Of a stretch of DNA of 64,000 bases, positions 29,801 to 32,779 are shown in pieces. The stretch spans positions 9,982,001-10,046,000 of the forward strand of contig NC_047063.1 of NCBI RefSeq assembly GCF_902459465.1. Direction: 5' to 3'. Numbering within the stretch: position 1 is the stretch's first letter; each line of letters starts with the position of its first letter. The position numbers were made by a program, and so were the translations under genes. Under the pieces are notes generated by a model, which saw only the letters and a list, made by a program, of their open reading frames with translations, ran no database searches and was not told the DNA's origin. Source of the stretch: Asterias rubens (lineage: Eukaryota).

Positions 29801-32779
29801 ATATTTCAAAAATGAACATTTGGAAATGAATTTTTCACATGTTGATTTTATGTTAAACATCTGCATTTATATAGGATTAAAACAATAAAACAGTTCCAAA
29901 AACCAAAGGTGTAGTTTGCCTTTAAACCATTTCCCTTTTCTCCTTCATACCACAGAATTTGATCCAGATGACGTATTCCTAGTTGAACCCAAAGCAGACA
30001 TTGTGATTCCAGAGGGGGGTGATGGTATTCTCATGTGCTCTGCAATAGAGGCCTCTTATGTTATCCACTGGGAAAAGAATGGCGAGCGAGTTCAATTCTC
30101 AGATATGATCCACATGTATTTGGGGGATAATCTGATAATTCGTCAGGCGATTATCTCAGACTCTGGGGTGTATACCTGTTATGCAGAAACGTTCGGTAGT
30201 GGGGTGCGTGTTGCAGAGGTACCTGCCAAGGTCACTGTAGAACCACAGCAAGTTGTAGAAGAAGGTAGGGTGACTCTCTACTTCATCCTCCATTAGGGTT
30301 GGAATGTTAAACCGTTTAACCATCACAAAAAATCCATCGAAAACCATCTCCTTATTACATTGTTTTACTAATTTCTCAAAAACTACAGCACCTCACCAAT
30401 TAATATTTTCAGGGAAGCTTTCTACTATCATTATCTTCAAACTGTGTAAGTTTAATGTAAGTCTGTGGACGTTGTGTTTATTGTCCTATAAAAAGTACAT
30501 AGACCATTTAAAGGCACTGGATACTATCGGTATTTGCTCAAAATATTTGTTAGCATAAAAACTTACTTGTTAGCAATCAATGGAGAGATGTTGTAAGTAT
30601 AAAACATTGTGAGAAACGGCTCCCTCTGAAATAACGTCGTTTTTGAGAAAGAAGATATTTCTCACTGAACAATTTGAAGTTGATTTCGAGACCTCAGTAT
30701 TTGATTTTGAGGTCTCGAAACCAAGTATCTGAAAGCACACAACTTCGTGTGACAAGGGTGTTTTTTCTTCCATTATAATCTTGCAACTTCGATAAACGAT
30801 TGAGTTCAAATTTTCACATGTTTGATATTTTGTGCATATGTTGAGATACACCAAGTGAGAAGACTGGTCTTTGACAATGTGTCCAGTGCCTTTAACAGTT
30901 AAACAAAACCACCAGTAAAAACAAACAAAAAGCTTTCAAATCTACAAGACCACTGGGTTTGTGGCTCAAAATGTTTACTAGACCAGAGTTCCCTTTTAAG
31001 AGACCAGAATCAAAATATTATCAAGCTTCCTGACCCAGTTTAGCGCACATTTTAAGATAACTGTCTTTATTTAAACAAGCACTACAACCAGTAAGAGAGT
31101 AATATTCTCCATAATATTGTTGATTTCATTTTTTTTTTTTTTGAGCGTATACTTCACTTTGTTATTGCTCATAGAATTGGAAGGTATTTTATCAGTTTCG
31201 AAGTCAACATCTGAACATTAATTTTTTGTTCAAAATGTTACTATTATTTTTCATTAGTTCAATTAAAAGACACGAGACTCTGGTGAAAAGTTTAAAGTGT
31301 AAAATTCTAGCCTTGCTCCACATATGTTCTTTGCAGGAAAAACATACTGGGCACTTTGAGACGCCCCTTGGGTGTGGTATAGTGCTATTATGATAAATAT
31401 ATGTTTTATCAATAGTAGTTACTGGTGTTTATACACTGCCATATTTTGATTACTAAATGCTGTAGGCCTACTTTATTTTGCCAACTGAAGCTTGCCCTTT
31501 TTTTTTTGCTGTATGTATTCCCCCATAATATTATTAGTTGTAATGTAGACAGCTGTATTTTGTGTGAAATGATGCACTTTATTTTGTTCACTTATACCTT
31601 TATCTTGTGGACAGGTTCTAAAGTTGATTTACAATGGATGAATTATTATCTAGTAACAATATTTGAGGTCATACTCTCTTGCTACTACAATTGTACACAA
31701 TTGATGTGCAAGTATTTCTATAATTCTAAATAACTATTTCGATGTGTTTATGAAATGTACAGGTATTGCTGATGCTGTTTCTAATGACTGTTTTTGTAAA
31801 TTGTACATTTCAGCTCTTAGCTGCCATATTGCAGTATTTTTTAATAAACCATTAAATAGGCCTAATGTTTATAATTTAATAACAATAGTACAAATTTTGA
31901 ATGAATAAATGACTCTTAACAATATCCTGTGTCTGTTGAATCCCTGCAGTGTGTGGCAGAGTAACATCACCCGAGGCAACCGGGATAGCATCAGAATCCA
32001 GTAACGCATCCCAGAGCGATATCAATGATGATGACCAGACCTTCCGCATCGTTGGAGGTACTACTGCCAAGATGGGATCGTCCCCTTGGATTGCACGTAT
32101 CTGGCTGACTAAAGACCGCAAACACTTCTGTGGTGGGACGCTAATCAACCGCTTCTGGGTCATCACAGGGGCTCACTGTATTACTGAATACTCGGTGACC
32201 AAGGCCGACATCAAGATCAGGCTGGGTGACCACGATATCTACTCGACGGAGGAAAACGAGCGACTGATTGGCGTGCAACACATCAAAGTGCACCAGAACT
32301 TTGTCGCGGATGATTATGACAGCGATATAGCCTTGATCAAGCTTGACGAACCGGTGGAGGAATTCACTGATTACCTCCGTCCAGTGTGCCTTCCCAGCAA
32401 AGCCTTGGCAAGGGCCCTCCTGGTTTCTGGGCGCAAGGGTACCGTCGCGGGTTGGGGTAGGCTGGTTGAGGGTGACAGTTCGCCCTATCCGCGTTTCCTT
32501 AAGGAGATAACGGTACCCGTTGTTGGACAGCGAAAATGCAAAGCCTCCACCAGATATCTTGTCACTGACAACATGTTCTGTGCTGGTTACAAGAAGAAAA
32601 CAGCTGATGCGTGTAGAGGCGATAGTGGGGGACCATTTTCCATAGAGCATGAGGGTAGATGGTATCAGCTTGGCATTGTTAGCTGGGGAGAGGGTTGTGC
32701 CAGGCAAGGCAATTATGGGTTTTATACCAGACTCATTAAGTTTCTCAAGTGGATGAATCAGTATATAGAAGAACATTAA
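9133..32779 (+). CDS. Mosaic secreted or signal-anchored serine protease zymogen: CUB - 3x(YWTD propeller-EGF) - 2x Ig - trypsin-like domain, 1592 aa
   Basis: 23 exons, all GT-AG and phase-consistent: 9133-9203, 9991-10218, 11196-11371, 11735-12188, 12627-12764, 13631-13766, 13946-14093, 15140-15253, 16297-16560, 17516-17669, 18587-18718, 21053-21167, 22156-22312, 22724-22852, 23907-24155, 25017-25176, 25846-25976, 26278-26547, 27168-27299, 28200-28346, 29026-29160, 29956-30264, 31950-32779. They sum to 4779 nt, one open frame ending in TAA. Confidence 0.9.
9286..9389. repeat. Near-perfect palindrome of about 104 bp (mini-MITE); half copy at about 35763-35806
   Basis: agacccagtaactggggcgctgtactccttttt...aaaaaggagtacagcgccccagttactgggtct. 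Confidence 0.75.
9440..9832. mobile_element. MITE family C (TTAA-type); related reverse partial copy at about 39028-39260
   Basis: gcaattggacactttcggtaaacag...ccattgccttctgtaaacccc..agttatttgtaaatctgtg matches the reverse complement of 39030-39250. Confidence 0.65.
10284..10628. mobile_element. MITE family A-related, reverse orientation
   Basis: ttaaaggccctg...ggtaatgaccaaacatgtaccttccctttaa; reverse-complement match to family A. Confidence 0.7.
11735..15253 (+). CDS. Exons 4-8: YWTD (LDLR class B) beta-propeller 1 and EGF-like module 1
   Basis: FFWAD, GIAVDWLARTVYWTD, LFWTD..PRIERSRLDG, LYWTS, LYVTD; then CDANPCEFLCVSDGGDAYSCLCQHGFTAMQDGTC. Confidence 0.9.
14703..15088. mobile_element. MITE family A
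   Basis: ttaaaggcagtgaacactattggtaatt...caattaccaataatgtctgtccagtgtcgttaa. Confidence 0.8.
15410..15735 (+). mobile_element. Degenerate 3' end of an L2-type LINE
   Basis: RPGLGSSGSMLFVPRTHLTSNGDRPFSNLAP..WNSLPQSLRD resembles the L2 ORF2 C-terminus; ends in agcgccttacaaatgctg...ttattatt. Confidence 0.7.
16103..16240 (+). mobile_element. tRNA-derived SINE
   Basis: A-box-like ggtggtctagttg and B-box-like ggtttgaatccc, followed by a non-tRNA tail actgagtatcactgctaacacaca that recurs at about 27550. Confidence 0.6.
16297..22852 (+). CDS. Exons 9-14: YWTD beta-propeller 2 and EGF-like module 2
   Basis: LFYS, GIAVDWLDKLLYWTD, FIFWTY..IERAALDG, LYFAE, LMWTE; then PCSDGMHDCEQLCLP..YICTCGIGYRLNEDETSC. 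Confidence 0.9.
16686..16812. repeat. (TTTG)n/(TTCG)n microsatellite
   Basis: Read directly from the sequence. Confidence 0.9.
16970..17270 (+). mobile_element. L2-type LINE 3' fragment
   Basis: GDAPAYLSDLVQMYTPGHR (G.AP.YL..L...Y.P.R motif) plus an (att)n tail at about 17250. Confidence 0.55.
19203..19590. mobile_element. MITE family A
   Basis: ttaaaggcagtggacactattggtaatt...aattaccaatagtgtccactgtcttta. Confidence 0.82.
21697..22070. mobile_element. MITE family A-related
   Basis: ttaaaggaactatagacactattggtaatt...gtgtccagtgcctttaa. Confidence 0.78.
22882..23272. mobile_element. MITE family A-related, reverse orientation
   Basis: ttaaaggcactgtacacgtttggtaagtgtcaaagaccag...gtaattaccaaacatgtaccttccctttaa. 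Confidence 0.78.
23907..27299 (+). CDS. Exons 15-19: YWTD beta-propeller 3 and EGF-like module 3
   Basis: GYDPIQGLVYWSD, VYWTD, LLWTR..IDKAFLDG, LYWTN..IESCDLSG, IYWTD; then [28 protein letters not shown]...C. Confidence 0.9.
24234..24621. mobile_element. MITE family A, reverse orientation, followed by a fragment to about 24710
   Basis: ttaaagacactggaaactattggtaattgtcaaagaccag...aatagtgtccactgcctttaa. Confidence 0.82.
24735..24895 (+). mobile_element. SINE-like fragment
   Basis: tgtggattaggttttcagtc...gggttttccctgg...ggttttcctcccacatctaaaactg resembles a SINE body; recognised by pattern only. Confidence 0.4.
25274..25436. repeat. Imperfect inverted repeat (mini-MITE) in protease intron 16
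   Basis: gcctctcttaatattcatgggtgacgtcataattcttacccaaaa...ttttgggttagaattgtgacgtactcatgcataaatattaagagaggc. Confidence 0.65.
26765..26808. repeat. (TTA)n microsatellite; others at 7835-7862 and about 17250
   Basis: Read directly from the sequence. Confidence 0.9.
28200..30264 (+). CDS. Exons 20-22: two immunoglobulin-like (I-set type) domains
   Basis: Ig1 (split over two exons): P.DVTLQVG...MC....IQWWKDGEEL...GLQI.DV....GLYTC. Ig2 (one exon): P.ADIVIPEGGDGILMC....IHWEKNG...LII......DSGVYTCYA. Confidence 0.88.
28521..28657. mobile_element. Small hairpin MITE family D; related pieces at 7151-7510, 34270-34520 and 2290-2345
   Basis: TIR GGGG(T)GGATTTCACAAAG...TTTGTGAAATCGACCCC; internal ctaggactagtcct motifs. 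Confidence 0.7.
30508..30895. mobile_element. MITE family A
   Basis: ttaaaggcactggatactatcggtatt...gtgtccagtgcctttaa. Confidence 0.82.
31950..32779 (+). CDS. Exon 23: linker Cys, activation peptide and complete trypsin-like serine protease domain in a single exon
   Basis: CGR...TFR|IVGG (Ile16 at 32048); His57 in TGAHC (32174), Asp102 in DSDIALI (32324), Asp189 (32606), Ser195 in GDSGGP (AGT, 32624), Ser214 (AGC, 32681), Tyr225 (32714). No intron across these 830 nt. Confidence 0.95.

Follow-up and report, generated by a model that had tools for sequence, protein, structure and literature searches.

An expressed mosaic serine protease gene in the starfish Asterias rubens, a probable relative of the vertebrate clotting proteases

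Background

Among deuterostomes outside the vertebrates, amphioxus, acorn worm and sea urchin were reportedly shown to have thrombin-like serine proteases by Ponczek, Bijak & Nowak in 2012 (J Mol Evol 74:319), and Ig-like domains are said to precede the protease in the amphioxus members. Here we describe a gene encoding such a protease domain in the starfish Asterias rubens. It lies in a stretch of 64,000 nucleotides (assembly GCF_902459465.1, contig NC_047063.1, positions 9,982,001 to 10,046,000, forward strand), which is called the window below and in which all positions are counted. The assembly (G000, the contig of the window being C2) comprises 417.6 Mb in 150 contigs. The window gene resembles the 2012 group in that its catalytic domain is nearest to thrombin, that it lacks Gla and kringle domains and the 60-, 186- and autolysis-loop insertions of thrombin, and that its relatives occur in echinoderms and hemichordates. 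It differs from that group in that its Ig-Ig-protease core carries an additional CUB domain and three YWTD-propeller/EGF units. Since thrombin-like proteases of echinoderms, hemichordates and amphioxus have already been published, the advance is one of detail and not of kind. The echinoderm-wide CUB/YWTD extension, the tick and mite members and the common intronless cassette with its phase-1 edge seem to go beyond the earlier descriptions that we found.

The origin of the vertebrate clotting cascade is a long-standing question. The window gene is a concrete, expressed invertebrate protease with features in common with the clotting enzymes, namely Tyr225, the thrombin disulfide pattern, codon markers and loop lengths of the factor X type, and the module boundary of prothrombin. 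Our preferred reading, to which we assign a probability of about 0.8, is that an expressed gene present across the echinoderms, whose last coding exon lies in this region, encodes a mosaic serine-protease zymogen that is secreted. This gene would belong to an old family of Ig-serine protease (Ig-SP) genes that have Tyr or Phe as residue 225 and occur in echinoderms, hemichordates, ticks and mites, and this family would be the nearest invertebrate relative of thrombin and of factors VII, IX, X and protein C.

Results and discussion

The protease exon

The open frame 31949-32779 (+) encodes 276 amino acids and is free of stops until its end. By direct reading, the Ser195 codon is AGT (32624-32626, within GDSGGP), the Ser214 codon is AGC (32681-32683, within IVSWG) and residue 225 is Tyr (TAT, 32714-32716), and an independent script that maps alignment columns back to codons reproduced all three. 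The catalytic triad was complete (His57 in GAHC, Asp102 in SDIAL and Ser195 in GDSGGP, columns checked in the alignment), and the primary-specificity residues Asp189 (TADAC), Gly216 and Gly226 were present. The histidine loop Cys42-Cys58 was intact (HFCGG...GAHC), and the domain contained the string GIVSWGEGCARQGNYGFYT. Every marker that the original prediction had listed (both serine codons, Tyr225, Asp189, the histidine loop and this string) was thus found again in the sequence. Eight cysteines formed the pattern 1-122, 42-58, 168-182 and 191-220, with Cys22-Cys27 absent in both the sequence and the alignment. The activation site TFR/IVGG (slashes in motifs mark a cleavage point or an intron) would give a new IVGG N-terminus after the Arg-Ile cleavage point. 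The Pfam Trypsin model (PF00089) matched over positions 1-220 of 220 with an E-value of 1.5e-62 and 211.7 bits against a cut-off of 20.6, and the AlphaFold (AF2) model of the domain had the two-barrel fold, with a mean confidence score (pLDDT) of 91.9.

An acceptor AG at 31948-31949 sets the exon start at 31950 in phase 1, and the donor GT of the upstream Ig exon, at 30265, sets the end of that exon at 30264. Transcript contigs from three public runs (X1, X2 and X8) had GT..AG introns removed across the last five exons, joining the blocks 27165-27298, 28199-28344, 29024-29160, 29956-30262/4 and 31948/50-33000+. As the contigs join the Ig exon straight to the protease exon, the gene is transcribed and the exon is used whole, without an internal intron. 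The open frame and the spliced contigs together uphold the earlier claim that the whole domain lies in one exon, 31950-32779. A pseudogene was considered and ruled out by the intact frame, the spliced transcript and the conserved triad. A further contig of 171 nt, from a poly(A) metatranscriptome of marine plankton (run X7), matched 32689-32858, the coding end and the 3' untranslated region (UTR), without a mismatch, which hints at expression in planktonic larvae.

Similarity to known proteases

The best 60 sequence matches shown among solved structures were all thrombin (up to 219 bits). In a search of 5.8 billion proteins the nearest sequences, at 47-50% identity, came from echinoderms and hemichordates and bore the names 'factor X-like', 'factor IX-like' or 'prothrombin-like', followed by vertebrate F7, F9, F10, protein C and prothrombin at 41-47%. 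When the AlphaFold model was compared with one representative per PDB cluster, thrombin was matched with a Z-score of 39.7, a root-mean-square deviation of 1.0 A and 46% identity. The corresponding structure-based identities were 40% for factor Xa, 36% for activated protein C, 35% for factor VIIa, 35-37% for MASP-1/2/3, 33-34% for C1r/C1s and 27-33% for CLIP proteases. The top 30 structural matches in Swiss-Prot were all FX, FIX, protein C, prothrombin or snake-venom FX-like prothrombin activators, with FX, a snake-venom activator of this type and FIX making up the top 9.

Judged by its disulfide pattern and overall similarity, the window domain is nearer to thrombin than to FX. Thrombin was its best sequence match, and the two have in common the four-disulfide pattern without Cys22-Cys27, Tyr225, Glu217, the motifs DNMFCAGY and RWYQxGIVSWGEGC, and a phase-1 intron just before the light-chain xCG. 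They differ in that the window gene lacks Gla and kringle domains, the thrombin 186-loop insertion and those of the 60-loop and the autolysis loop (the latter two visible as gaps in the alignments), and in that the window domain has Asp70 where thrombin has Lys70. With factors VII, IX, X and protein C the window domain shares a 186-loop of factor-Xa length and acidic residues at positions 70 and 80 (Asp70/Glu80, a possible Ca2+ loop). Unlike those factors, the window gene has no Gla-EGF-EGF arrangement and its protease domain has no Cys22-Cys27, and identity to them was 34-40%.

Phylogeny

A maximum-likelihood (ML) tree was built under LG+C20+F+G4 from 92 protease domains, the domains having been extracted from all of the proteins fetched. 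The outgroup consisted of insect and shrimp 'trypsin-1-like/TMPRSS9-like', brittle-star ovochymase-like and fish TMPRSS9 (polyserase-like) proteases. The window domain grouped with its asteroid orthologues at 100/100, within an ambulacrarian clade of 31 rows supported at 85/70. The F2 clade (100/100) and the Gla-EGF clade (99/93) both excluded it, and the domain is thus a member of neither vertebrate clotting clade. A fourth clade held mite, tick-like and further sequences (98/94). These four clades were split from the outgroup at 95/74. The predicted relationship to the clotting proteases was therefore borne out by the sequence and structure matches and by the tree, where the domain stood with the F2 and Gla-EGF factors and apart from digestive-type proteases.

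In approximately unbiased (AU) tests, neither ambulacrarian + F2 (p = 0.51) nor F2 + Gla-EGF (p = 0.129) was rejected. Ambulacrarian + Gla-EGF cost 10.3 log-likelihood (lnL) units and was not rejected either (AU p = 0.125). As no arrangement was rejected, the tests fix no branching order among the four clades.

Among the proteins P0021, P0079, P0065, P0086, P0087 and P0088 in the tree, those from birds and turtles with the source names 'FA7', 'FA9' and 'FA10' clustered by taxon and not by factor, and the protease domains of Takifugu 'factor VII X4' and 'factor X X2' were identical. Such factor names in databases are therefore unreliable as labels.

Residue 225 and serine codons

Proteases with Phe or Tyr at residue 225 bind Na+, whereas those with Pro225 do not (Stojanovski & Di Cera, PMC9669250). 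Each of the 148 ingroup domains (45 ambulacrarian, 12 F2, 82 Gla-EGF and 9 chelicerate or other) carried Tyr or Phe there, whereas 116 of the 133 outgroup domains carried Pro. As an independent character, it supports the clotting-factor grouping of the ambulacrarian clade.

The codons of the three marker residues are given in Table 1. The AGY/AGY/Tyr set of the window was earlier described as being of the factor X type, and it does equal that of fish F10 and differ from that of fish F2, in which Ser214 is encoded by TCG. The serine codon class is not fixed within the family, however, as the Holothuria and mite genes show. The Holothuria case (locus L008, 33483) is an Ig-SP gene with TCC for Ser195, which is AGY in its relatives. 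In another protein, P0069, which clusters with the S. purpuratus orthologues, residue 195 is Thr, possibly an intermediate of the switch from AGY to TCN.

Table 1. Codons of Ser195 and Ser214 and identity of residue 225 in the genes compared
Gene	Ser195	Ser214	Residue 225
Window	AGT	AGC	Tyr
Acanthaster	AGC	AGC	Tyr
Diadema	AGT	AGT	Tyr
Antedon	AGT	AGT	Tyr
Ptychodera	AGT	AGC	Phe
Own-genome paralogue	AGT	AGT	Phe
Holothuria	TCC	AGC	Tyr
Mite	TCA	TCC	Tyr
Fish F2	AGC	TCG	Tyr
Fish F10	AGT	AGC	Tyr

These codon changes would also suit another account, in which the domain is an ordinary member of the trypsin family, its likeness to clotting factors due to convergence or chance and its codon markers meaningless. 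Both the TCC of Holothuria and the TCN/TCN of the mite demonstrate that the codon class can change within a clade, and the best non-clotting domains reached 37-43% identity, little below the clotting factors. Set against this are the distribution of residue 225, the fact that all top sequence and structure matches were clotting factors, the split from the outgroup in the tree, and the phase-1 module boundary held in common with prothrombin (see below). We regard an ordinary trypsin as quite improbable.

Gene structure and domain architecture

The window gene has 23 coding exons, and the order of its protein is signal peptide, CUB, three YWTD-propeller/EGF units, Ig, Ig and protease (Table 2). 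The orthologue in Acanthaster planci (XP_022109029, 1591 aa, annotated as 'LRP4-like') has the identical domain order and is 73% identical in the protease domain. Its gene has exactly 22 introns and its exons are collinear with 22 places in the window, between 9995 and 32776, which is consistent with the 22 introns previously counted here. The CUB/YWTD/Ig/protease architecture was also found in Patiria, Amphiura, Diadema, Strongylocentrotus purpuratus and the crinoid Anneissia, with an additional Sushi domain in the sea-urchin, brittle-star and crinoid orthologues. Among the proteins retrieved, the CUB/YWTD-Ig-Ig-protease arrangement was found in no phylum other than echinoderms.

Table 2. Features of the protease gene in the window, from the 3' end to the 5' end
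Feature	Position	Strand	Evidence and remarks
Start of 3' UTR	32780..33000	+	run X2 transcript contig extends ~1.5 kb past 33000 (X2 record 5, contig 1559-2611 on 31948-33000)
Last coding exon	31950..32779	+	phase-1 start; stop TAA 32777-32779; linker with Cys1 (VCG), TFR/IVGG, whole S1 domain
Intron 22	30265..31949	+	GT..AG, phase 1; very high-copy repeat at ~30400-31000
Ig domain 2 exon, 309 nt, phase 1-1	29956..30264	+	Pfam I-set/Ig_3 E 6e-8; in spliced contigs
Ig domain 1, second half	29024..29160	+	spliced contigs; matches Acanthaster residues 1175-1219 with ...GFYTCTI...
Ig domain 1, first half	28199..28344	+	spliced contigs; Acanthaster orthologue alignment
Third EGF-like exon (FXa_inhibition/LRP2-type EGF)	27165..27298	+	Pfam E 9.6e-8; spliced contigs
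Third YWTD beta-propeller, four exons	23906..26540 (~23906-24154, 24995-25189, 25847-25969, 26277-26540)	+	tblastn with Acanthaster orthologue; Pfam Ldl_recept_b
Second YWTD propeller and second EGF	16293..22851 (~16293-16568, 17515-17688, 18597-18716, 21051-21167, 22156-22314, 22726-22851)	+	Pfam; tblastn
First YWTD propeller and first EGF	11722..15270 (~11722-12189, 12628-12765, 13596-13766, 13940-14092, 15115-15270)	+	Pfam; tblastn
CUB domain, two exons	9995..11375 (~9995-10195, ~11190-11375)	+	Pfam CUB E 5e-9; tblastn; second exon from reading frame

The original prediction placed the protease on an LRP-like scaffold. This description holds for the YWTD/EGF units only, since a CUB and two Ig domains are also present and LDLa repeats are absent. 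Like the LRPs, the protein has three units of a six-blade YWTD propeller and EGF, with 25-31% identity to true LRPs (LRP4, LRP5, LRP6 and LDLR) of arthropods, molluscs, coral and fish. It differs from them in that the LDLa ligand-binding repeat (PF00057) was absent from the Acanthaster, Patiria, Amphiura, Diadema and S. purpuratus orthologues, while being present in the true LRPs of the same search, and in that the Acanthaster sequence terminates with the protease and has neither membrane anchor nor cytoplasmic tail. A true LRP was ruled out on the absence of LDLa repeats and of an anchor. The automatic annotation of the orthologues as LRP4-, LRP6- or LRP2-like is an artefact, which the window gene corrects, the echinoderm proteins being predicted secreted proteases and not lipoprotein receptors. 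The window frame likewise ends with the protease domain.

The two Ig domains immediately precede the protease, in the place where neither an EGF-EGF nor a kringle-kringle pair was found. A domain search detected no Gla domain in the window gene or its orthologues. A whole-genome search with PF00594 (Gla) likewise gave zero matches, a weak result since the controls were also silent. The whole-genome kringle search gave 16 matches, several of them clustered on C21 and C22.

The CUB domain invites comparison with MASP-2, MASP-3, C1r and C1s, whose histidine loop Cys42-Cys58 is absent. They have in common with the window protein a single-exon protease domain, an AGY codon for Ser195 and an N-terminal CUB in the same protein. 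The parallel with MASP-2/3, C1r and C1s drawn earlier stands for the single exon and the AGY codon, and fails at the histidine loop, which the window domain has kept. In addition, the window protein has Ig-Ig in place of CCP-CCP and lacks the order CUB-EGF-CUB-CCP-CCP. The protein might nevertheless be the echinoderm counterpart of MASP/C1r, docking on pattern-recognition molecules and starting a complement- or clotting-type cascade in coelomic fluid. The N-terminal CUB, the Sushi domain of the sea-urchin, brittle-star and crinoid orthologues, and the predicted Arg-specific zymogen with a tethered catalytic chain would suit such a role. So would the automatic name 'MASP1-like' given to the hemichordate, tick and mite relatives; the Ptychodera protein of that name, used as a query, returned CUB proteins only. 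However, structure-based identity to thrombin exceeds that to MASP-1/2/3, C1r or C1s, and the domain order that defines those proteins is absent. We consider this counterpart unlikely, and retain the reading of an Ig-SP family member nearest to the clotting proteases.

Introns and the module boundary

Exact exon maps were obtained for the genes of the window, Acanthaster, Diadema, Ptychodera, Holothuria and Antedon, for a mite gene, and for fish F2 and fish F10 (Anoplopoma). In all six ambulacrarian genes mapped, a single protease exon followed a phase-1 intron located one residue before the Cys1 motif 'xCG'. The intron check in orthologues that had been proposed for the window gene thus gave the same result in Acanthaster, Diadema, Ptychodera, Holothuria and Antedon. 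The intronless cassette stood in differing N-terminal contexts, namely CUB-CUB-Ig-Ig-SP in Ptychodera, Ig-SP in Holothuria, and a stand-alone form with three further tandem copies in Antedon. At locus L016 (8614-10825), outside Ambulacraria, an Ig exon preceded one undivided protease exon, and the acceptor before xCG was again in phase 1. An Ig domain directly upstream, with a phase-1 intron before xCG, was common to the window, Ptychodera, Holothuria, Diadema, Acanthaster, mite and L016 genes. The phase-1 boundary was also kept in the mite gene (ND/VCGKP) and in fish prothrombin (ED/ECGRRPLF), both of which have introns inside the domain.

The intronless state had been explained by the insertion of a processed, retroposed AGY/Tyr225 cassette into an LRP-like gene, as proposed for MASP-2/3 and C1r/C1s. 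The protease domain is indeed intronless against 22 introns elsewhere in the gene, Ser195 is encoded by AGY, and introns interrupt this domain in vertebrate F2 and F10 and in the mite gene. However, the identical phase-1 edge recurs on differing architectures in five echinoderm classes, in hemichordates and in the non-ambulacrarian L016. Since the intronless cassette is joined to differing N-terminal domains, it predates the LRP-like (YWTD/CUB) scaffold, and its capture onto that scaffold by retroposition is not supported. Moreover, the edge of the cassette also delimits the module of the mite gene and that of fish prothrombin, which points to an inherited boundary of exon shuffling and not to the random end of a cDNA. 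The Ig-Ig-SP core is common to hemichordates, ticks and mites, so that YWTD/CUB was added to a protease gene and not the reverse. With the histidine loop intact, unlike that of the MASP-2/C1r/C1s type, we hold a retroposed origin to be very improbable. The intronless cassette is at least as old as the ancestor of echinoderms and hemichordates, an age at which traces of a poly(A) tract or a target-site duplication would not be expected to have survived.

As to the beginnings of this cassette, an ancestrally intronless module and an early intron loss have roughly even odds. When the three mite, five F2 and four F10 introns were placed on one alignment, no position was common to them. One mite and one F10 intron, both in phase 0, lay one codon apart before VTxNMFC. 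A further locus, L017 (~8960-10010), had a phase-0 intron after ...APWQ/, in the exact place and phase of the SPWQ/V intron of fish F10. The sequences of L016 and L017 grouped with tick and mite proteins in the ML tree.

These two near or exact correspondences would be expected if introns had been present in the domain in the ancestor of the Tyr225 clade and an early ambulacrarian had lost all of them together, for instance when the 3' end of the gene recombined with a partial cDNA. Parallel gain is a plausible explanation of the sole exact match, however, since the L017 and F10 introns sit on the proto-splice site CAG/GT. The absence of any position in common between mite, fish F2 and fish F10, the intronless state of L016, a close relative of L017, and the count of events (two gains are fewer than four or more losses) also speak against the loss. 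We treat a derived single exon as a serious candidate whose chances fall somewhat short of even.

A broader proposal is that the Ig-Ig-protease Tyr/Phe225 family is the bilaterian-wide sister of all vertebrate clotting proteases. The intronless AGY/AGY/Tyr225 module with its phase-1 edge would then be near the ancestral form of the modules of thrombin and of factor VII/IX/X/protein C, each lineage having acquired its introns afterwards. We offer this as a doubtful, tentative extension. If it were true, Na+-linked allostery would have its origin in animals of the sea, with the site held saturated by their body fluid. The echinoderm CUB/YWTD fusion would also represent an undescribed class of secreted, propeller-bearing regulatory protease, and possibly the missing initiator of coelomic clotting or complement.

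Points against the preferred reading

Several points weigh against the reading of the window gene as an expressed zymogen gene of a family next to the clotting proteases. The split between ingroup and outgroup falls short of full support (95/74). The tree was sampled without MASP, C1r/C1s, factor C and amphioxus sequences, and the greater distance of these is given by structure-based identity alone. In raw identity, the window domain was almost as similar to some outgroup domains (37-43%) as it was to clotting factors (40-44%). A signal-peptide exon was sought upstream in the window gene and not located. Finally, sequence alone is the basis for the proposed function, activator, substrates and two cation sites.

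Predicted activity

Under the preferred reading the protein would be secreted, and its zymogen would be activated by cleavage after the Arg of TFR/IVGG. The catalytic chain would stay tethered to the non-catalytic chain through Cys1 (VCG) and Cys122. From Asp189, Gly216 and Gly226, cleavage of substrates after Arg or Lys is predicted. In extracellular limited proteolysis, substrates or cofactors may dock on the surfaces of the CUB, propeller and Ig domains. Tyr225 together with 186- and 220-loops of factor-Xa length suggests a Na+ site, and Asp70 and Glu80 suggest a Ca2+ site. Since the body fluid is near sea water in composition, the putative Na+ site would be permanently filled, with Na+ acting as a stabiliser of the active form and not as its regulator. 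The YWTD/CUB extension is probably a later acquisition made within echinoderms through ordinary phase-1 exon shuffling.

A role in coelomic clotting, in the wound response or in complement-like activation is a reasonable guess. Literature searches for functional work on this protein in the coelomic fluid of starfish or sea urchins yielded nothing relevant. The enzyme is tractable, and could be used to ask whether Na+/Ca2+ allostery is older than the vertebrates, in which direction the introns changed, and what role such proteases had before fibrinogen-based clotting.

Related loci and other features of the window

A paralogous protease domain was found on the same chromosome, 2 Mb upstream (L002, G000:C2:7949173-7949889). 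It formed one open frame with AGT/AGT and Phe225, and had 'R-VTRGD' in place of the expected IVGG activation N-terminus. It clustered with the Acanthaster protein P0257, which consists of three fn3 domains and a protease. In Antedon mediterranea (L004, 10558-17955), four thrombin-like protease cassettes, each a single open reading frame (ORF), lay in tandem, one of them frame-shifted near 14779. The next gene at this locus combined three trypsin domains with Ig domains.

Very high-copy repeats occupied parts of introns 20 (28401-28800) and 22 (30400-31000) of the window gene, with a contig word depth of up to ~9e5 and many chimeric joints. These are probably an abundant, transcribed mobile element. 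Repeats also occurred at 7685-8044(-), 14749-14949(-) and 59322-59660(+), and related ORF remnants of the form '...GAVSHN(D/V)LYHQPLPITRHQ(K/E)RFYANNYF...' recurred on both strands. An open frame at 3970-4329 (-) contained a methyltransferase-like motif (…VDVIVSEWM…) and probably belongs to a neighbouring gene on the opposite strand. Within an intron of the protease gene, a low-complexity run at 16572-16851 (+) encoded repeated CLFV in all three forward frames.

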